Origin: Setoptus koraiensis
Taxonomy: Eukaryota > Animalia > Arthropoda
NCBI GenBank assembly: GCA_048013815.1
Contig: CM106585.1
Location: 5,208,001 to 5,272,000, forward strand
Reading direction: 5' to 3'
DNA length: 64,000 nt
A program made the translations under genes and the position numbers. Each line of letters begins with the position of its first letter. Position 1 is the first letter of the stretch. Of the stretch, positions 9,084 to 39,200 are shown in pieces. Below the pieces are notes generated by a model. The model was not told the origin of the DNA. It saw nothing but the letters and a program-made list of their open reading frames with translations, and ran no database searches.

Positions 9084-12000
9084 TTAGGCCATACTGTCAC
9101 TATCATCATTGTCGTCATCACTATCATCAACATTTTTCGTTTTGACAATGTTATCATTCTCGTCGTCATCATTGACGCTCTTACTATCGCCATCATCATC
9201 ATCTTTGATGCTCTTGCTGTCGTCATCATCGTCGTCGTCTTTGGTGCTTTTGCCGCCATCGTCATCATCGTCTTTGCTGCTTTTGCCGCCATCGTCATCA
9301 TCGTCTTTGCTGCTTTTGCTGTCATCATCATCGTCGTCGCTATCACTATCGCTGGCATCATCATCTTTACCATGAAATTCTTTTTGATCGTCCGAACTGC
9401 GCTCAACTTCGGAATCAGAATCGTTCAGCTTCGACTTAGAAGACTCAGCAATAACCAAAGACTTATTTGGTCGTTCTTCGTCATCGGAATCAGCACTGTC
9501 GGAATCATTTTCGGACGAGGAAACAATTTCTTTCGATTTGAATTTGCTGGATGATGATGATCTTTTACTGGAAGATGTTTCGCCTTTGGATTTTCTTTGA
9601 CTCTTGGATTTTCTTGACTTCTTATCTTCACTAACTCGTCGGTTCTTTGCTTTCTTCTTCTGTCTCTCAAGGCGCTCTTCATTAGCAAGCTTTTCGTCGG
9701 CGGAGTTACTGGCATCAGTGATGAAGCCATCGGTATTTTCAGATCTCTGAATTTTTCTCTTCTTTGAAGGTCTTTCGTCCATAGGCTCCTCAGCAATTTT
9801 GTGTTTTGTTTCCTCTTGCTTCCTAATGATTTCTTTTCGCTTGGCTTCCATCTCTTCTTTTCTGCGCCTCTCTTCCTCCTCTCTTAACCGTTCTTCTTCT
9901 TCTTTAGACGCTTTACTGAGAGCTAGTTGTTCGTCGTGAAGACGCCTTCGTTCTCTTTCGTCGTCATCTAATTTACGTGCTCGAGTAACAAAGATTGTCG
10001 CCTGACTCAACAAGTCCTGACATTCCCTAACTTCACGGGCTGCAGCATTTGTATCCAACTTTGATTTGTCGCCACTTCCACAGAGGTAGTGGAAGTACTT
10101 ATGCGCCAACCCAAGCTCATCTACAGACATCAAAACTGTTCTTAACGAACTTTTCGTATCTCTAAATCGCTGGGAGGCCAATTTTTTCAAGACTATAGCC
10201 AAGTTATATAGGATTACAGTATCATGGGGACAAACATGGCGAGCTTGAAGAAGCGTGTTCTTACATTCATCTAATTTGTTGGCCTTAAAATATGCTCTTG
10301 AAATGTAGAGCATAATCTCAGTGTTTGGATGTGAGTAGAACTTTTTAAGGCAGTTCTCGTACATCTGGACAGCGGCTACATATTGCTTTTGTTCCACATA
10401 GATGTGAGCAATGTTAACCCAAACATCGGGGAAATCAGCTGTAGCTTCTCTTACTTGAGCAAATACATCTCGAGCCTCATTCAGAAGCCCTTTATTGGCG
10501 AGTACACAACCTATACCGCTTGCAGCCCATATATTCCTAGGGTCGTGCTTTAAAGCGGCCTTGTAAAATTGCAATGCCCTTTCACGTTGGCGTTTCAATT
10601 TTTCCTTATCTTTGATAGGCTGATATAGATTTTGAAGCCAAACATTGCCCATAGCAATCAATGAATAAATATCTGGATTTTGTTTGCTCTTCTGATTAGT
10701 TTCTAGTATTCTTTCGAACTTCTTCTGACCAGGGCCCCATTCTTGTTTTGCCAAATGTAGATTTCCAATCAAAGACCATGCATCAGCGTGATCCGGATCT
10801 ACTCTCAGTGCTTCCTTAAACCTATCCGAGGCGTCGAAAATTTGTCCTCGATCTCGATCCATACAACCTAATCGTAAGTAACAGTCTATGTAATTGGGGT
10901 GATTCTTGAGAATGTCTTTGTAGACTTTTTCAGCTTCATCGTGTTGGTAAAGAGATTCATAGAGACGACCGAGATTGTAGCGAATCGTATAGATGATGCA
11001 ACTATAGTATTGCTCATCATTCATCATTCCTTCCTCACACTGTTTAAGTGCTAGATTATAATATGTTTCTGCCTCAGTCAGATTCTTGTTAGCAAATAGT
11101 AAAGCCGCTATGTTGTTATATATTTCAGGAGGGACAGAACCTCCCTCAGTCTCCTCAAGTATCTGTATGGCAGTTTTGTAGGCTGTAAGGGCTAACTGAG
11201 TATCTTTTTGTTCCGAAATCGAGGCTAATTCAATCCAAGCTGTGTGATCTTTCGGATTCTGTTCGGTAACTTTTTTGAAGTAGTTCAATGCTTGTTCTCG
11301 TTTTGTTTGACTGGTTGTTAATGCATAAAGTGTACCCAGAACTTTCATAGATTCATAGTCATTGGGATGCACCTTTAAAACGTTTTCGAAACATTGTGTT
11401 GCTAAATCCAATTCACCACGATGAATGTACATTTGACCCAAACCATACTGGGGTAAAATAAATTGAGGACTGCTAAATTGTGTGGCTTTGTAATAAAATT
11501 CGAAGGCTTCGTCGTATTGATTATTTAAATGGTAGGCTCTTGCCATTTGATAACAACTTTCGGCCTGCATAGCCTCTACATCTGTATTTTCAAGGGCTTT
11601 CCTTGCCAAATGCATAACCTCGCGGTCTTTCTTTCTAAAGAAAAAGTGATTGGCCAAATGAATTAAAACCATTGGATCATTCGGATCAATTTTGTAAGCT
11701 CTCTCTAGCATTTTTACACCTTTTTTCATTGATTCCACTGTTTTCTTATTCAATTCTATGATAGCCAGACCAACAAGTGCACCAACACAACGTGGGTCAA
11801 CAGCTAGTGCCCTATTGAATGCCTGCTCGGCTTTCGCGATATTATTAAGACGATAAAAACAATGTCCCATTCCTAGTCTAATGTCAGCAGGGCACCGAGC
11901 ATTCAAGTTGAGTGCCTTCTTGTAGAGTTGTAAAGCTGTTCTTTTACCTTCTAGTTCCTTCTTATTGAATTCAATACATGCTCTTCCGAGCAACGAGGGA

Positions 12001-12697
12001 ATGTTTTCAGGTTCTCCATGTTCTTGCTGCTGTGACAGAACAAAATTGAATTGAACATCTGCCTGTTCTGTTTTTCCCTCTATTAAACAATAGTAGGCAC
12101 GTCCAAGCAAATGATACTGATCGTATAAGAGCATTGTATCAGCCTGGGTGAAGAGATCTGTGGCCCGAACGAAGTATTCTTTCTTTTTGTCTGGATTTTT
12201 GGTTTGCTTTCCTTTTCGGGCATAGTAGATGGCCAATGTATCTAGAGCCCTCATTTTCTCTTTCACAGCTTCACTTTCTTCGGCTTGGTTCTGAGATCCT
12301 CGCGGATCTAAGCTATCTGCATTCTCAAGAGATTTTTCTAATAGCAGTTCCAGAGCATCTCCGTTTCCTTGTCTGTAGTATTCCAACTGAACGAGCAGCA
12401 AAAGAGTTTTATTATTAGTATTATTGTAGGTATAATGCTAGTGCCAACTTTCAGTTTCTCTATCATTGGAAGAACATCTTTATATTCAGAATATTTTTGT
12501 AGTTTTCGCTGATAGATTCTACGTTCTACAATATTTCACTAAGAACAACTTACTGCAAGTGTGATCCATAGGCTCAGTTTTGCCTTTTCGTTTTTAAGAA
12601 CGCCTAAAATCTCTTCGGGTAGAGGTAGATTCGAACAATCGAGTTCGATAACTTCGTCGGCATCCCTGAGCAGAGGTATCTCTATGTTTCCCGGCAT
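9084..12697 (-). CDS. CTR9: PAF1 complex subunit CTR9, join(12697..12554,12386..9084), 1148 aa
   Basis: Exon 1 MPGNIEIPLLRDADEVIELD...LWITLA splices in phase 0 (GTAAGT at 12553, CAG at 12387) to LEYYRQG. TPR array with RLGMGHCF, WGPGQKKFERIL, NIWAASGIGCVLA and FAQVREATADFPDVWVNIAHIYVEQKQY. Acidic tail. Confidence 0.97.
9248..9313 (-). repeat. 33-bp coding tandem repeat in the CTR9 tail (KSSKDDDDDGG)
   Basis: Two exact copies of ttttgccgccatcgtcatcatcgtctttgctgc (9248..9280, 9281..9313), with degenerate copies on either side (~9170-9365). Confidence 0.9.
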
Positions 12698-30178: not shown

Positions 30179-32018
30179 ATGATGTCGAGGGTCAATTTAA
30201 GATTCTACTCCTCATTACTAAGAACCGATATACTCAACAGACATATACCTCCTATCAGGCACCAAACATGCTTACGAGAGCCCCTGGGCAGATCTTTCAG
30301 CCAATTCGATCAATATCCCACCATTGGAACAAATCCAGATCGAAGAACGGAAACTTTCGTTGTATGTACATAATCTAAACTATGTATGTATTTGTAGTGA
30401 ATAAAAGCCAAATACTCTATCCGTGATTCAACCTACTTCCACTTCCATTATCCAGGACAATGAAAGAAACATGAGAAAACTAGTGGCCGACTTAAAACTG
30501 AAACATTCCCACATTAGTCTTGGTGGCAATGAAAAGGCACGAAGCAGACACACCAGTAAAGGGAAACTGTTAGTAAGAGATAGGATAGACTACCTCATTG
30601 ACGAAGGTTGCCCATTCTTGGAGTTATCTCCATTGGCGGGCTACCAATTGTATGAACCTGATGAGGAAGTTGCTGCAGGCGGCATAATAACGGGAATTGG
30701 CAGGATATCAAATACTAACTGTATGATTGTTGCCAATGATGCCACTGTAAAAGGAGGCACCTACTATCCCATTACAGTAAAGAAACATCTACGCGCTCAG
30801 CAGGTGGCCTTGGAAAATCATCTACCGTGTGTTTATCTAGTAGATTCAGGAGGGGCCAATTTGCCAAGGCAAGCTGAGGTGTTTCCTGACGAGAATCATT
30901 TCGGACGGATATTCTATAATCAGGCAAATATGTCAGCTAAGGGCATTGCACAAATCAGTGTGGTAATGGGTAGTTGTACAGCTGGCGGTGCCTATGTTCC
31001 AGCGATGTCAGACGAGTCTGTGATAGTTAAAAATCGAGGAACGGTATTCTTGGCTGGCCCACCGCTTGTCAAGGCCTCCTTGGGCGAGGACATATCAGCC
31101 GAAGACTTGGGCGGGGGCAATTTGCATTGTCGCCAGTCAGGAGTGACTGATTACCTAGCAGATGATGACCAACATGCTCTAATGATAACGAGGAGAATTG
31201 TGTTCAATCTTAATAGAGACAATCAGCATGACAAACAGAAGGGTTTACTTTCGTTTGAAGAACCCAAACTAGCAAAAGAAGATATCTATGGTATTGTTGG
31301 GACAGATCTCAAGAAATCATACGATTGCAGAGAAGTGATTGCACGTATAGTGGATGGTAGTAGATTTGACGAATTCAAGCCTCTCTATGGCGAAACATTG
31401 GTGACAGGTTTCGCTCGCGTCTATGGCCGATTGGTGGGTATAATAGGCAATAACGGAGTTATATTTAGTTCTAGTGCATTGAAAGGGGCGCACTTCGTTG
31501 AATTGTGCTGCAAACGAAATATCCCAATTGTTTTTCTTCAAAACATAACCGGTTTCATGGTAGGTCGGCAAGCCGAATCAGGTGGAATCGCCAAAGATGG
31601 AGCAAAGATGGTGACTGCCGTAGCTTGTGCTAGAGTGCCAAAATTTACATTCATAATAGGCAGTGCTAACGGCGCTGCACTTTATGGTATGTGTGGTCGA
31701 GCTTATGCACCTAGATTTATTTTCATGTGGCCCAATGCTAGAATATCTGTCATGGGCGGCGAACAAGCAGCTCGCGTTCTTGTGACAGTCAAAGAACAAC
31801 AATTGGGGCGCAATCTTACTGACGCAGAACGACATCAAATGAGTCAACCAATATTGGATAAATTCGAATCGGAATCCATTCCCTACTATGCAAGTGCTCG
31901 CCTTTGGGACGATGGTGTGATAGATCCCTTAGACACCCGACGCGTTCTAGGGCTGAGCATGGACGCAGCTCTAAGCGCACCTGAAAAGTCCACAACATTT
32001 GGAATATTCCGGATGTAG
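30179..32018 (+). CDS. MCCC2: Methylcrotonoyl-CoA carboxylase beta chain, join(30179..30361,30456..32018), 581 aa
   Basis: Basic transit-peptide exon ([15 protein letters not shown]...TIGTNPD) joined in phase 0 (GTATGT...TCCAG). Motifs [64 protein letters not shown] and FGIFRM. Confidence 0.97.
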
Positions 32019-32199
32019 TCTTGAGAGACATATAGTCTGTTACTAGTGAGCAATATCCTATCTAAATAAATGGAAACAAAATCACAACTCTATCATAGAT
32101 TTCAGCAATTTTACTAATCCACATTTAAGATTTTAATCATCTTTACTTGATTTTCTCGTGAATGCTTTCACAACAAATTGTAGGCAGAGACCAGCAAGT
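32011..32199. repeat. Direct repeat copy 1 (MCCC2 stop, shared 3' region, duplicated MBOAT C-terminus)
   Basis: Matches 34018..34205 with 8 substitutions and 1 indel over 189 nt (manual alignment). Confidence 0.97.
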
Positions 32200-33147
32200 A
32201 GTTGTCGGCCGTCGCTGTCGTGGTCACCATCAGAGGATTGCGCAAGCTCAACAAATGCGTTCGCTGTCTTGGTGATATTGTGGCCAATCGTTGGGCCGTT
32301 TTGTGGCTCGTTGGCTGGACCGTTGTTTGTTTCGGCTGCTGCTGACTCGCTTGATGACGACAGGAACGGTACTGATGGTGAGTGCTCATTAACAAGTCCG
32401 CCATCTTGTGCTGATTGATCGTCACTGTTTGCGTCTGCGTTGTCGCCTTGTTGTTGCCGTTGTTGTTGTTGCTGCTGTTGTTGCTGTTGCTGTGAGATAC
32501 TATTGTTGCCGTTACCTGTTGATGTTGCTGCTGCTGCTGCAACGGGTTGATTGGGGGCCACAGGTGTATCGAGACCGTCATTGAGGGCTGACTCAGCAGC
32601 TGATGCTGCTGCTGTTGGTGGTGCTGGTGTATGTACTGGAGACGATGCTCGTGCACTTGTTGCTGTATGTGATCTGTCATTGTCAGCTGACTGCTGTTGT
32701 TGTTGTTGTGCTCGTAGTGGCACTTGCTGTTGTTGTCTATTATTTGCTGCACCCAGGCGTCTAGGCGGTGCATCTTCAGCGTATGACACTGACGATGGAT
32801 TAGGCTCAATATTGGTATCAAGTAGCGGCGGTGAAGTCTCAACAGGAGTACCATTAAGTGATACTTCGTCCGTGTCGCAGCATCTATAAAGAGGGGAATT
32901 ACAGGTTGCGTTTTGTATGACATTTCGGCAGATGATTGTGTTCAATATAAACAAGCGGCACACGCCCGGACACTGGATCAATTCTTGCGGTTGTCGCTGT
33001 TTCTGTTGTTGTGGTTGTTGTTGCTGCTTTGTCGACTGTTTGAACGGTTGCGATTGTTGTTGCTGTTGTTTCCGGTGCTGGTGCGCTGCTGCTGAGTGGC
33101 CTGCGAGTAGATGTTGCCCAGCAATTCTGACGAGTGCTGAAAAATGT
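32133..33147 (-). CDS. Chimeric protein, last exon: masquerade-type clip domain, Q/A/S-rich linker and MBOAT-derived C-terminus
   Basis: The frame is open from acceptor TTTGCACCATTCAG|A at 33147 to TAA at 32133 (~337 aa). It contains CPGVCRLFILNTIICRNVIQNATCNSPLYRCC and ends LAGLCLQFVVKAFTRKSSKDD. The first exon is unresolved; a candidate donor CAG|GTGAGC lies at 33796. Confidence 0.6.
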
Positions 33148-34017
33148 CTGAATGGTGCAAATTGAAATGAAATTTAAATTTAAAGCGTTAGTTTTTGTCG
33201 TAGCTGTTCGCCAATGCGCCGTCGAGAGAATGGAATAAGTGTCAGTGTGTCGTGTCCGGTGAACCGATCACAACTGTCCGCGGCAGGGTTCAAATTGGCC
33301 GTCGTTGAAGAGTGATAATCAATTAATTACAGCCGCCACAGCTATCGCGAGGAACAGTTTCAAGAAGCGATCGTTTGACACAGAAAGAGGAATACCTGTT
33401 GTAGGCGCTGATGCAAATAGTATATCTGTATGTGTATATGGAGTTGATCGGCGGCTGAACTTGACCACACCGTTAGCCGGCCGTTATCACCCTTGCAATA
33501 TCAGCTATCGTGTGTGTGTGAGCAAAATCCAGATATGCCCGGATCAGCCGTTCATCTCGGTACGGATGTCGCTGTGGATCTCAGCGTGGATCGCAAGCCG
33601 CTGCTGCTTGCCGGCCGGACAAGATAAACTACTGACTCAAATGGTCAGCAGTTTCCTAAAAGTGGACGGTCAAACACGACGCCTAAAGAATCAGCACACA
33701 ACTAGATGGGTCACACATATCGAGCTAATTATGTTGGCTGCCGCTCCAATCAGCAAGACCCATCTCGCCCAGTCTGGCGTGGATGCGCCGGCTCACCTGG
33801 TGACCAGTTTTCGGACAAACATTTTTCATGTATATACAAATATATGTACAAACGCAGTTGTACTGTCTGCATACTTGTTCCTGCTAGAAGCGGCGAAAAG
33901 TCGCCATAAGCGGACAAAAATCGCCGGTATGCGGCCATTATCTGCCCAAAATGGTTGTGTCGTCGCACGTCTCGCATACAATTTGATTGCTATCTCGGTG
34001 GAACGAGTTTAAAATGT

Positions 34018-34205
34018 GGATGTAGTCTTGAGAGACATATAGTCTGTTACTAGTGAACAATATCCTGTCTAAATAAATGGAAAGAAAATCACAACTCTAT
34101 TATAGATTTCAGCAATTTACTAATCCACATTTAAGATTTTAATCATCTTTACTTGATTTTCTCGTGAATGGTTTCATAACAAATTGTAAGCAGATACCAG
34201 CAAGT
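34018..34205. repeat. Direct repeat copy 2 (native MBOAT C-terminus and 3' region)
   Basis: 188 nt, ~95% identical to 32011..32199. Confidence 0.97.
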
Positions 34206-35662
34206 CCCAATATATGTAGAGAGAAGTACAGGCTCTTGTATATAGCCAAACTATTACTGAAGTCCAAAATGACAAAAGGGAAGGCGATGTATGCGATAGT
34301 CAGTCTAGTCAGAGTAAATGTAATGACATCGTATAACTTGGGCAAAAATCTTCCTCTCTGAAACAAAGGACGGATGTTTCTCCTTCCAACTCGCGCTGCT
34401 TGAGTGAAAAGTGCACCACCGAAAAATGTCATATAATAGCCAGGATAGTAACCATGCCAAATGGCTGATAATGTATAAGTAGCCATTAAGTTTAGCGTTT
34501 GAGCTCGCTCATAGGCGGTGCGTCTAAGCCAATTTTGAGTTGTTTTGTTCCAGGCGAGTATAGCATCTCGTAAACTCGAGCATGTTTCGAATCTCCATAA
34601 TTCCATGTTTGAAATGAGATCCCACTTTGGTTTCCCATCCTGATCATATCCGTTGAATCCAAATCCAGTTGCATTACTAACGGACTCTCCTAAATGCCAG
34701 GCGACGTAGTATTTAAGTCTGCTGAGCACTGTAAATATAAGTATGTAGAAAAAACGCATAAATAGGGGTGTCTCGACCAAAAATTCCGAGCTTCTGAGAA
34801 AGTCAACTTGAAATTTAGGAGCCACAAGAAGTAGTAACATAGCACTTGTTGAACTTATTAACAATTTTGTGAACGAAGCCTTTAAAGCTCCGGGGGGTAT
34901 ATCCTTGAAAGATGAGATTCTTATGAAGTCTATATAGTCCTTATAGTACATGATTGGGCCACACATCACAGAGGGAAAATGAAAGAAATAACCCATAAAG
35001 TCTCTAAAATCAATTGGTTCTTCGATCGCATAATGCTCTTGCTCTTCTGTCAAGCCATTATCCTGGAACTTGATTCCATGGTTGTGCTTAACAAGATGCT
35101 TTTCATCAATGTAATTTGATACTAGACTATCGCTATAGCTATTATTATTATTATCATCGTGATTTAAATTATCGCCATCCTGGAAAGATGTTGTTGTTGG
35201 TGCTGAGTCGTGAGAACCAGATTTGATTGAGTTCTTATTGCCTTTGGCATCTCGTTTATTATCAGTTTTGTATTTTTTAACTTTTCCGCCATCATGTAAG
35301 CAAAATCCTAGTGAGCTCAATTTTTGAACGGCAATCATAAATGGTCCACTAATATCAATGACATAACCACCATAGTCTATAAGTTGTCTGCTTAGGTGAG
35401 CATATGACAAGAAAGACAATGATAGAGCCAGTGTCACTCTTTGAACGTACTTGCGGGGTGTATATTTGCACGCTACATAGGAGACAGCTGAGAACAGCAT
35501 AAATGAGTTTGCCTGGCTCCCGAAGCAATAGTAAACCATGAGAATGCCCGGTATATAATTGTATTCATTTCGTAAAGATTTTGGCACTAGTCTATATGGT
35601 CCAGCCAATGTGAGCCCCACCAAATGGGATGTTATAAACCTAAATTGATCCGGAGTTAACAT
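34139..35662 (-). CDS. MBOAT2: Lysophospholipid acyltransferase, MBOAT1/2 (Oysgedart-like), intronless, 507 aa
   Basis: DISGPFMIAVQKLSSL, KYYVAW...NATGFGFNG, WDLISN, AWNKTTQNWLRR.AYER and the catalytic LSAIWHGYYPGYY. Confidence 0.93.
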   Translation of the reverse strand: MLTPDQFRFITSHLVGLTLAGPYRLVPKSLRNEYNYIPGILMVYYCFGSQANSFMLFSAVSYVACKYTPRKYVQRVTLALSLSFLSYAHLSRQLIDYGGYVIDISGPFMIAVQKLSSLGFCLHDGGKVKKYKTDNKRDAKGNKNSIKSGSHDSAPTTTSFQDGDNLNHDDNNNNSYSDSLVSNYIDEKHLVKHNHGIKFQDNGLTEEQEHYAIEEPIDFRDFMGYFFHFPSVMCGPIMYYKDYIDFIRISSFKDIPPGALKASFTKLLISSTSAMLLLLVAPKFQVDFLRSSEFLVETPLFMRFFYILIFTVLSRLKYYVAWHLGESVSNATGFGFNGYDQDGKPKWDLISNMELWRFETCSSLRDAILAWNKTTQNWLRRTAYERAQTLNLMATYTLSAIWHGYYPGYYMTFFGGALFTQAARVGRRNIRPLFQRGRFLPKLYDVITFTLTRLTIAYIAFPFVILDFSNSLAIYKSLYFSLHILGLAGICLQFVMKPFTRKSSKDD

Positions 35663-36043
35663 CTTGCAATAAAAATACTACTAAAATACCACGTTTACTG
35701 TACATGTGTTGATGGGTTTGAGCCTTTTGTTTTGGAGAGTGGTGAATGTTGTTGGTATTTCTATTGTGTATACTTTATCTAGTCGAGCACCATCTGACTT
35801 TGGCTGACTAGTGAAAAGAAGACAATCCTTTGTCCAGAGTGTTTTATCGTTGACAATAATTAACGTTCCTCTCGTATTGTCTGACGATGATCATTAATTC
35901 ACCTGTGTATAAGTGTGTGCGTGTAATTAGTCGGCTAATTAGTTATTGTATATACCTTTGTTCGGTTTGTGTAGTATGGATTTATGAGTTGACGACAAAG
36001 TGTTAGCCAGACAAACTAATAGATAATTAGTGTCCCGACTGAT

Positions 36044-36270
36044 GTGTGTGCTTTTTTTCCAATGGCTTTTCTCCCATTTCTTTTTGAAGCCGCCAGGGCG
36101 GCGCACTCAGATTTTTGTGTGCAATGTGAGCTAGCGTCAGTTGAGTAGCGTCAACCAGTTGAAACATTTATCGATACACTCTACCATCGGCTGCGCTCCT
36201 TTGCGCGCCCGCTGCGCCCTTGGCGGAGAAAATAGAAAATAGAAGAAAAGCCATTGGAAAAAACGCACAC
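36044..36270. repeat. Imperfect inverted repeat (~58-bp arms, ~107-bp spacer); MITE-like element or hairpin
   Basis: The left arm gtgtgctttttttccaatggcttttct...cgccagggcggcgca is the reverse complement of the right arm tgcgcccttggcg...gaaaagccattggaaaaaacgcacac, with an exact 19-nt core. Confidence 0.75.
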
Positions 36271-39200
36271 AGCACACAGTAAAGTTAGCTGTATAACTTG
36301 CATAATTTTAACGAGATGCAACGCGCAAAATTCAAGACCGAAATTGGCTTTATGTGCGCAAAATTCCTCTAGAGTCTAGACGCGACCATGAGATTAGACT
36401 CACGATTTTTGGCATTCCAAATGACTAGTGTCTAGAGTTATTCACAAGTTGCGAACGACCAGTCAATGAACAGCCAGAAAAACTCTTGTCGTGAAGTCAC
36501 CTGGTGATATAAGTCGTTTTTTTCACTCTGTTCTTCTCACTCTGTTCTGTATTTCATCGTTGCCCTCGGCTGCTTAATTCACAATTCTCGCCGCGGACTT
36601 CTTGTGTCAGGCGACACAAGTTGTGCCAGCCTGCAGCTTCTCAGAAACAAGTCGCTGACAGTCGGCAAAAAAATCAGTTTCAAAATTTTCTTGTTAACAA
36701 GTCTTTGGTGGTTTGTACCATTGCGCAACAGGATTACCCATTGCATGTTGTGGCCGTATGAGACATGGACAACAACTAATAATAATATTCAAAAAATTTG
36801 CATGGATTTGAGAAAAAGTTGGTCCATGTAAATTAGTTAGATTATATTGTTAGTCTAGGCTCTGTCGTGGCAACTAGACAGAGAAATCGCTGCGAGTCGA
36901 CTATTGCTTCAGAACATGACTTGATAGATGACTTTGACAGGCCCTGGCGTAATTGAGAATTGTAGCGTGCATAGAAACAACCTATCTGATGGGAGTCTAA
37001 TCATCGGATTATGCTCGAGGCGATGTCGGAATTGGCTGCCCGCCAATTTCAAAGACAAGCACTATTTTTCAAGAGTTATTCTTGAAGAAAATAAAGATCG
37101 AGGGAACCTTTCCACATTTTGGGGGAGCACAACCAATGCTCGGGAAGCATTTGCTTCCGGCGGGCAACAAATGAGTTGTAGTTCAATATTCATTGAGACA
37201 ATTATACAATGGAGTACAATTTCATGCTAACAGTACACTTTATTTGTCTATATTTTATGTGCACTCTGTTCCGGGGCCGCAGGATGTCGGACAGCGGGCA
37301 CAAAAGACGGGTTGTCGCCATTCGCCAATAATTGAGGCTCTCGCTGGCCCATAAAAAACTTTCAACAACAACGACAAGAACAACAACAGTGACTACTGGT
37401 GACAGTTTGTGTAGTGTACGCGTCTGGGCCGTTTCATCAACGTTTTGTATCACAGAAAGTATACATGATAGAAGTATATTTCATCGACAGTATATTTAAT
37501 TTATGGGTACATGGTGCATTTTATATGAACATACAAGGCATCTCCAACGAGCAAATTGTTCTTGAGTATAACTAGGTTATCCGTTTCAAATAGAGGACAT
37601 GAATCTAACATGAATTGAGAGACACTGACTACCGGACATTGTCACAGGCGTGCAATGTTCTACTATTTGCATTCAATTTATAGCAAGTATCTTCGATCTT
37701 GTTCTAATCTATTTCGAAACGATCATAAATGCGTTTAGTTTGTTTTAACGATTTAGTATAAGCTATTGATGGTTGCTTTATCGTTTCACTTGCCACGACT
37801 GTTTTAGATTCGTCAACTTCATTCGACGAACTATCTCTCTCTAACAGTGAACTCTCTACATGAGACAAATCGTTAATGGCTTTAGAAATGGCAGAGTTAT
37901 ATTATCCACGTAAACATCATTTTAAAATATTTACTTTGTTAGTTGACGATATCAATTGACTTGAAGGTAGATTTGTCGACAGCAATGTTGGTGCCTTGAT
38001 AAGAGTGGGAGATGATGACTTTATTGCTGGTATGATGGAACTTTAGACAGACAATCGGTCAGTCTAAATCAGATGAAACATACTGGTGTAAGCTGATCAG
38101 GAGGCCTCTTTTAGCTACATTTGCGTATAGAGACAGAGGGAGAATTGATTGTTGCAACAATCTAGTCAGAACGAGATTCTTTTTTAGAATTGTTGCAAGA
38201 ATCATTGCAAGAATTGTTGCTTCCATTATTTATAGTTGATGATGTCTCGTGACTGTTTTTTCTTCGAGATAAATTCACTCGATAGAGAGAAATTCGATGT
38301 GGACATGTAGAATAGTTTCAGCCCATACGGCATTAGCGTGCCTGTATAAAACAGCGCTAATCCCTAGTTAAAGCATAAAATTGTCAACATTAATATTTAG
38401 GTGACCATACAATCGATAAAGCGATTCAGTCAGCTCCTCTTTTGTAACACATGATTGGGATACAGAAGAGAAGAACTGAAAAGAGGCGGACAACCATACA
38501 TTTCCAAACATCCATCGCATCTCTCGTTTGTAAAACAAACGATGTCCAGTGATGATGTCCAGATTTAGTTCTTGATTTTTATAATTGACGGAGAATTGTT
38601 TCAACCTTTCAAGACATGGAAATATTACTAAATAATTACTGAGTTGTGGACTAGCACAGATTAGCTTATTTGGATATTCTATCATTGAGCATAGTTCACT
38701 ATAGGAGAAATATGGTCATTTGCGCCTGACAACGCGAACTCTATGGTCGATCCTAGAGGACTTTATCCAGCGCAGCCCATTACAGCAGAGGTTTGTTCGT
38801 CAAAGGGCCGAGCTAACTCCTCTAAGATGGAGATAGAGCATCTAGTATTCCGGTGGAAACTCAATGCTTCAAACCACTTTCAACCGTCTCGACCGTATCG
38901 ACCATTTCGATCATTTCGTCCAACTTTGATTCTTCTCGCTAGCTTTGGATTGATCGGTGGATGTTGATTGCTTCAAACTAACAAAGTCCCAATTGTGAGT
39001 CACTGGTATTGAAAGATCGAATCAAAGCGGGCCAAATGGGCAAGTGGGCTGCATGTCGGGAACGAGCGAATGACGACGAACGACAACGACAGTTTTGTCA
39101 TATTCATATTTGCGAGTAATATTTTACTTCGATTATCGCAGTTATATTGTCATGCTCATTTAACAACTGTCATTGATTACTACTATCAGTTTAATATATA

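Follow-up and report, generated by a model that had tools for sequence, protein, structure and literature searches.

Chimeric open reading frames (ORFs) arising from partial gene duplication are known from Drosophila and other organisms. Here, we describe an insert of 1818 nucleotides (nt; positions 32200-34017) that stands between the genes MCCC2 and MBOAT in a 64,000-nt stretch of the genome of Setoptus koraiensis (assembly GCA_048013815.1, contig CM106585.1, positions 5,208,001 to 5,272,000 of the forward strand). The whole stretch is hereafter referred to as the window, and all positions are counted from its first letter. As in the chimeric frames described elsewhere, a DNA-level partial copy has come to lie beside another gene, and its frame runs into foreign sequence; unlike in those cases, only a stop-bearing tail was recruited, by way of a target duplication, and neither a start nor a promoter came with it.

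The gene family that contributed the insert is that of the masquerade-type serine protease homologs, which combine PF18398 knots with a trypsin-like domain. The fragment shares with these proteins the Cys spacing, the CPGxC start, the motif TPVETS.PL, the Gln-rich linker, and the phase-1 splice acceptor. It differs from them in retaining only the first of 4-5 knots, in lacking exon 1 with its ATG and signal peptide, and in ending, without a trypsin-like domain, in 21 codons taken from MBOAT. A counterpart for the insertion itself is found in tandem duplications with filler, which have been described as the result of staggered (paired, opposite-strand) nicks (Vaughn and Bennetzen, 2014; Schiml et al., 2016). 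In both settings, a short direct target duplication (tens to hundreds of nt) flanks the inserted DNA and transposon ends are missing; the present filler, however, reaches a length of 1818 nt and was taken from a different gene.

On balance, and with moderate confidence, we favor the reading that the insert is a young, DNA-level partial duplicate of a masquerade-type gene that arrived by way of a staggered break. Most likely, the fragment is silent or, at most, carried in untranslated read-through RNA downstream of MBOAT, rather than a working protein gene.

Structure of the Duplicated Junction

The insert and the two repeat copies that enclose it are made up of the following parts:

32011-32199: repeat copy 1, 189 nt, consisting of the MCCC2 end and a duplicate of the final 21 MBOAT codons, with the tail-to-tail spacer of 114 nt between them
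32133-32199, minus strand: copied MBOAT tail that closes the frame of the fragment, 21 codons and a stop that an ATTAAA signal overlaps
32200-33136, minus strand: Gln-rich stretch of ~0.94 kb from the 5' end of exon 2, the big exon of a masquerade-type serine protease homolog
32877-32972, minus strand: masquerade-type clip knot with six Cys (Pfam PF18398, phmmer), behind which stands the family motif TPVETSPPL
33137-33139, minus strand: splice acceptor ttttcag, phase 1, matching the exon-2 acceptor of relatives in phase and place
33140-34017, minus strand: non-coding part of the insert, putatively the 3' 878 nt of parent intron 1
34018-34205: repeat copy 2, 188 nt, which serves native MBOAT and carries a relic of the MCCC2 stop

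Pairwise alignment of the two direct repeats yielded eight substitutions (at 32050, 32060, 32077, 32094, 32165, 32171, 32183, and 32189) and one 1-nt indel (at 32109), counts that had been reported in the original prediction, a short note made from the sequence alone. This corresponds to a divergence of 4.3%, and the pair 32011-32199/34018-34205 is the sole long dispersed repeat within the window. The first 8 nt of each copy (GGATGTAG) are the final ones of the MCCC2 coding sequence and contain its stop; the other end of each copy is formed by the last 21 MBOAT codons on the minus strand. Because the indel is placed between the MCCC2 and MBOAT stops, it is non-coding, again in agreement with the earlier claim.

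The MCCC2 ORF ends in copy 1 (at 32018) and the MBOAT ORF ends in copy 2 (at 34139), just as the prediction had placed them. From this distribution of stops and from the content of the repeats, it follows that MCCC2 and MBOAT originally converged on a single copy of the junction, with 114 nt between their stops; the insert now splits the duplicated junction. The proportion of G and C is 0.49 in the insert versus 0.40 in the window.

The Fragment and Its Captured Tail

A minus-strand frame extends without interruption from 33140 as far as its stop at 32133. Its 336 codons contain no Met, and a stop codon lies 12 codons upstream of it, so translation would need a start to be spliced in. Translation of this frame recovers the exon that had been predicted at 32972-32877, with its Cys pattern C-x3-C-x9-C-x8-C-x6-CC and CPGxC start, and shows it running on into the copied MBOAT tail. 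There, the frame meets the copied MBOAT stop and ATTAAA signal, so that the proposed capture of a stop and a terminator holds. The fragment ends in LAGLCLQFVVKAFTRKSSKDD and native MBOAT in LAGICLQFVMKPFTRKSSKDD; the copied coding tail differs from the native one by three non-synonymous changes and one synonymous change.

The copied tail takes in just 10-11 hydrophobic residues from the final helix of MBOAT, and the 19-residue Kyte-Doolittle maximum is 0.88 for the fragment versus 1.81 for the native MBOAT protein. With such a low maximum, a membrane tether is not expected, and the suggestion that the product might be membrane-tethered is abandoned.

Over the full length of the exon, codon usage is at its best in the frame of the knot, but a young copy would show this in any case. 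The DNA is rich in CAG and CAA, a composition that holds several frames open on both strands, so the length of an ORF proves little here.

On the plus strand, an open frame of 235 codons (33305-34012) occupies the part of the insert that is non-coding and stops 6 nt short of copy 2, where the copied MCCC2 poly(A) signal would be available to it. Considered as a second gene, this frame was rejected: it has no Pfam match, low Atlas recognition (2037), and a barely positive codon score, little above the expectation from the absence of stops. Though long for chance, it is probably not a gene.

Identity of the Knot and Origin of the Insert

The Pfam family CLIP_SPH_mas (PF18398) matched the knot over its full profile (positions 1-33) with 19.4 bits and E=0.0014. 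The clip-family match foreseen in the original prediction therefore exists and is complete in extent, but it lies below the gathering cut-off of 26 bits. An exhaustive phmmer search with the 60-residue knot region against 1.84 billion (1.84e9) representative proteins returned 10 matches, two of which were low-complexity proteins, while the remaining eight (P0003-P0010) had E values of 2e-6 to 1e-3. PF18398 is present in all eight of these relatives, above the cut-off in seven, and neither the six Cys nor the CPG nor the PVETS motif behind it varies across the eight aligned sequences. Thus, the Cys spacing and the CPG start are indeed typical of masquerade knots.

In an Atlas feature search, arthropod Clip-domain clusters ranked first (score 0.81), which is a lead only. 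The AlphaFold model of the knot reached a predicted local distance difference test (pLDDT) value of 66, and a Foldseek comparison of this model with the PDB gave only beta-defensin-like matches (E>4), with no significant match to solved clip domains. Word-indexed protein searches with the 335-residue frame, with the knot region, or with a profile headed by a long relative were either blank or swamped by Gln-rich words, and a metagenome scan with the knot gave no confirmed match. Judging from its sequence relatives, we assign the knot to the masquerade-type clip domains.

Three of the phmmer matches are ORFs of 1140-1622 residues with several knots, and the fragment is collinear with the N-terminus of these relatives, from an LL.YA-like start through knot 1 and TPVETS.PL to the Gln-rich linker. 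At the corresponding loci (L001-L003), a conserved ORF of 200-280 residues stands ahead of the big one; it has a signal peptide and ends in TTTTCAG/GTAAG, a phase-1 donor. On the same strand, 400-520 nt downstream of the big ORF, lies a Trypsin ORF. In the relatives, the ATG and the signal peptide are located in exon 1 together with conserved motifs, and intron 1 measures 778-1101 nt. Given the knot ORF, the Trypsin ORF, and the signal-peptide exon, these loci are true masquerade-type serine protease homolog genes that the ORF caller reported in pieces. Full-length relatives accordingly end in a trypsin-like domain, as had been expected.

The ORF caller split each of the relatives' genes into three, namely exon 1, the multi-knot exon, and the trypsin-like exon (L001 8231-15859; L002 412-5938; L003 8651-14411). 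As a result, P0003, P0005, and P0014 are partial, and protease-less in appearance only.

The acceptor of the fragment lies in the relatives' phase and place, and the 878 nt upstream of it showed no match, in any frame, to exon 1 of L001-L003; the insert can thus be read as the tail of intron 1 joined to the first ~310 codons (~0.94 kb) of exon 2. Comparison with these relatives confirmed an origin from a masquerade-type gene. In the original prediction, a 5' fragment of such a gene had been inserted with a target duplication; the fragment and the 188-bp duplication stand, but the piece does not include the true 5' end of the gene, since exon 1 is absent and the frame has no Met.

When L001-L003 were compared with the window by tblastx, matches were confined to 32778-33056. 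Neighbors common to L001 and L003 (OTU, LCM, WD40, NRF-acyltransferase, capping enzyme, and NOL10), further knots, and a trypsin part were all missing from the 64-kb window, which likewise contains no parent copy and no knot outside the exon itself.

A Proposed Route for the Insertion

Neither terminal inverted repeats nor a poly(A) tract was found at the ends of the insert. Together with the retained intron, these findings argue for a copy made at the DNA level. Two other origins are unlikely: a transposon bounded by terminal inverted repeats, because such repeats are absent, and a retrocopy, because there is no poly(A) and 878 nt of intron-like sequence are retained upstream of the acceptor.

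The insertion may have begun with a break, staggered by ~188 nt, in the 114-nt tail-to-tail spacer of MCCC2 and MBOAT. Both overhangs would have been filled in, and the gap bridged by 1.8 kb of filler copied from a masquerade locus. Each resident gene would have kept its own stop and poly(A) signal after the duplication, and the run of the fragment's frame into the copied MBOAT tail would be a by-product with a one-in-three chance. Because the duplication spans the stops and poly(A) signals of both genes, the neighbors are intact, which is probably why the insertion survived. The absence of exon 1 left the fragment without a start codon, a signal peptide, or a promoter of its own.

Read Support and Hints of a Second Copy

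Logan contigs of four runs (X1, X2, X5, and X6, the last two of which look like one data set filed twice) were placed on 31000-36900. In X1, the depth was 122 over MCCC2, 150 over copy 1, 150-157 over the insert, and 118 over MBOAT. This uniformity over genes and spacers identifies X1 as a DNA run; X5 and X6 are probably DNA as well, given that 55.7 Mb of contigs nearly matches the apparent genome size. In every run, one contig leaves MCCC2 and reaches 32040 in copy 1, one starts within the insert (at 33299 or 33789) and reaches 34047 in copy 2, and one connects copy 2 with MBOAT. Junctions 32010/32011, 34017/34018, and 34205/34206 are crossed in this way by contigs of X1, X2, and X5/X6, and the contig breaks coincide with 30-mers common to both copies, as expected. 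Junction 32199/32200 is in none of the contigs among those listed; the bin 32182-32378 has depth 0 in X2, X5, and X6, and is covered in X1. The three-junction structure is thus real DNA, present at full rather than half depth, while 32199/32200 lies outside the contig support. The original prediction had named reads across the junctions as its check on the assembly; contigs cross the junction of the insert with copy 2 and the outer edges, but none among those listed crosses the junction of copy 1 with the insert.

The same contigs hint at a second copy. In X1, the contig over 33128 has a depth of 247, twice the single-copy level, and stops at the branch point of the version seen in the window (33136-33319, depth 157). 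A variant contig of X5/X6 (33039-33328), which reads across the acceptor, differs from the window at 12 places, 11 of them upstream of the acceptor. Within 33039-33345, these runs contain only the variant version, at 2-3 times the depth of neighboring contigs, and a further variant branch occurs at 33329-33345. The double-depth contig and the variants upstream of the acceptor suggest a second locus, the parent, that has both exon and intron and shares the exon, with ~6% divergence in the intron; this suggestion comes from depth and graph shape only. The putative intron divergence is close to the 4.3% that separates the flanking copies. The variant at 33039-33345 could stem from the parent copy, from a tract of gene conversion, or from a difference between strains. 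Position 33128 itself is C in all runs and T in the window.

Competing Explanations

In the original prediction, the insertion had created a new chimeric gene. For this to be so, an upstream start would have to have been acquired and spliced into the acceptor at 33137, giving a protease-less, single-knot clip protein with an MBOAT tail, an outcome that we regard as unlikely. One candidate for the missing start can be delimited in the non-coding part of the insert:

33797-33977, minus strand: hypothetical new first exon, with ATG at 33977, 33938, or 33872 and donor CAG/GTGAGC in the right phase

This exon might supply the start, running from ATG 33977 to the donor at 33797; alternatively, an MBOAT read-through transcript might provide a donor. 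That a first exon was born in the former intron, or that a read-through donor feeds the acceptor, and that the fragment is consequently a real gene, appears very doubtful. The knot with its six Cys and the motif TPVETSPPL are nonetheless intact, and the acceptor has been retained. Several observations also weigh against a silent fragment: no stop interrupts the 336 codons of the frame, and their usage is good and coding-like; an in-phase ATG exon lies upstream, with a donor scoring 8/9, a site of a kind that arises in only 4% of shuffles; and the tail in copy 1 supplies both a stop and an ATTAAA signal. Moreover, the exon contigs may be near-identical to the parent while the intron and flanks are 4-6% apart, which may reflect constraint or gene conversion, although this indication is weak and depth-based. 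The parent locus is itself known only indirectly, from contig depth and graph shape, and the silence of the fragment is something that we infer. Set against a working gene are the lack of Met in the frame and the lack of a signal peptide in the peptide of the hypothetical first exon, even though a knot with three disulfides needs the secretory route. A spliced joint into the exon was seen in 0 of the 4 runs, of which X1 is DNA and none is identifiable as RNA. The CAG/CAA-rich composition keeps several frames open, an intact frame needs no selection in a copy of such young age (4% flank divergence), and the tail is too short to span a membrane.

The fragment might also matter only passively, as a 3' untranslated extension of the MBOAT messenger or as non-coding read-through RNA of the same strand, antisense to the 3' end of MCCC2. 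It lies on the MBOAT strand, 122 nt past the MBOAT stop, and in the genome of an eriophyoid mite, Aculops lycopersici, neighboring genes are so near to one another that they are often merged in transcript contigs (PMC7738191). However, the ATTAAA signal of MBOAT is kept in copy 2 with its site unchanged, so most transcripts should end before the insert, and we consider a role of this kind to be quite unlikely. It is very improbable, finally, that the insert does not truly lie between MCCC2 and MBOAT and that its placement is an artefact of assembly or haplotype. Such an artefact would be in keeping with the lack of a listed contig over 32199/32200 and with the zero depth at 32182-32378 in X2, X5, and X6. 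Yet the repeat copies differ at nine places, with copy-specific contigs for both; contigs of all runs connect the insert to copy 2 (33299-34047), and others join MCCC2 to copy 1; and all parts stand at full single-copy depth in X1, which argues against a half-depth haplotype. The young, most likely silent partial duplicate therefore remains the reading that we favor.

Resident Genes and Other Features of the Window

The two genes that flank the insert are the following:

30423-32018, plus strand: MCCC2-type carboxyltransferase, 3' ORF of 531 codons in the ORF table (Pfam Carboxyl_trans, E=3e-153)
34139-35662, minus strand: MBOAT7/LPLAT7-like acyltransferase, intronless, 507 codons (Pfam MBOAT, E=4e-35)

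The MCCC2 stop (32016-32018) and an AATAAA at ~32065 both lie within repeat copy 1. For the MBOAT protein, an exact look-up found no entry on record, and the closest Atlas clusters are those of arthropod LPLAT7 (0.97). Relatives of MBOAT at three further loci (L004-L006) share ~60% identity with it, but their tails are too different and no MCCC2 lies close by. Hence, the changes in the copied tail are not polarised by L004-L006, nor do these loci provide an empty-site comparison.

Upstream of MBOAT, at 36045-36271, there is an inverted repeat with 54-nt arms that are 80% complementary and 119 nt apart. Reads of X1 and X2 cover it at 5-27 times single-copy depth, so a small repeated element of the miniature inverted-repeat transposable element (MITE) kind is its probable identity. 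Elsewhere in the window, a minus-strand ORF of 1105 codons (9084-12401) contains an acidic repeat region at 9155-9372, made up of five tandem GAT/GAC-rich units of 33-36 nt.

Biological Meaning

The locus shows how a tight tail-to-tail gene pair tolerates an insertion: the 188-nt duplication rebuilt the stops and poly(A) signals of both residents, and the same duplication gave the incoming fragment a stop and a terminator. As the fragment has neither a start nor a signal peptide, its biological weight is modest unless transcription and translation occur. Should it prove to be a real gene, it would represent gene birth caught in the act, with a single staggered-break insertion providing stop, tail, and poly(A) signal. 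Events of this kind are raw material for new genes in a streamlined genome.

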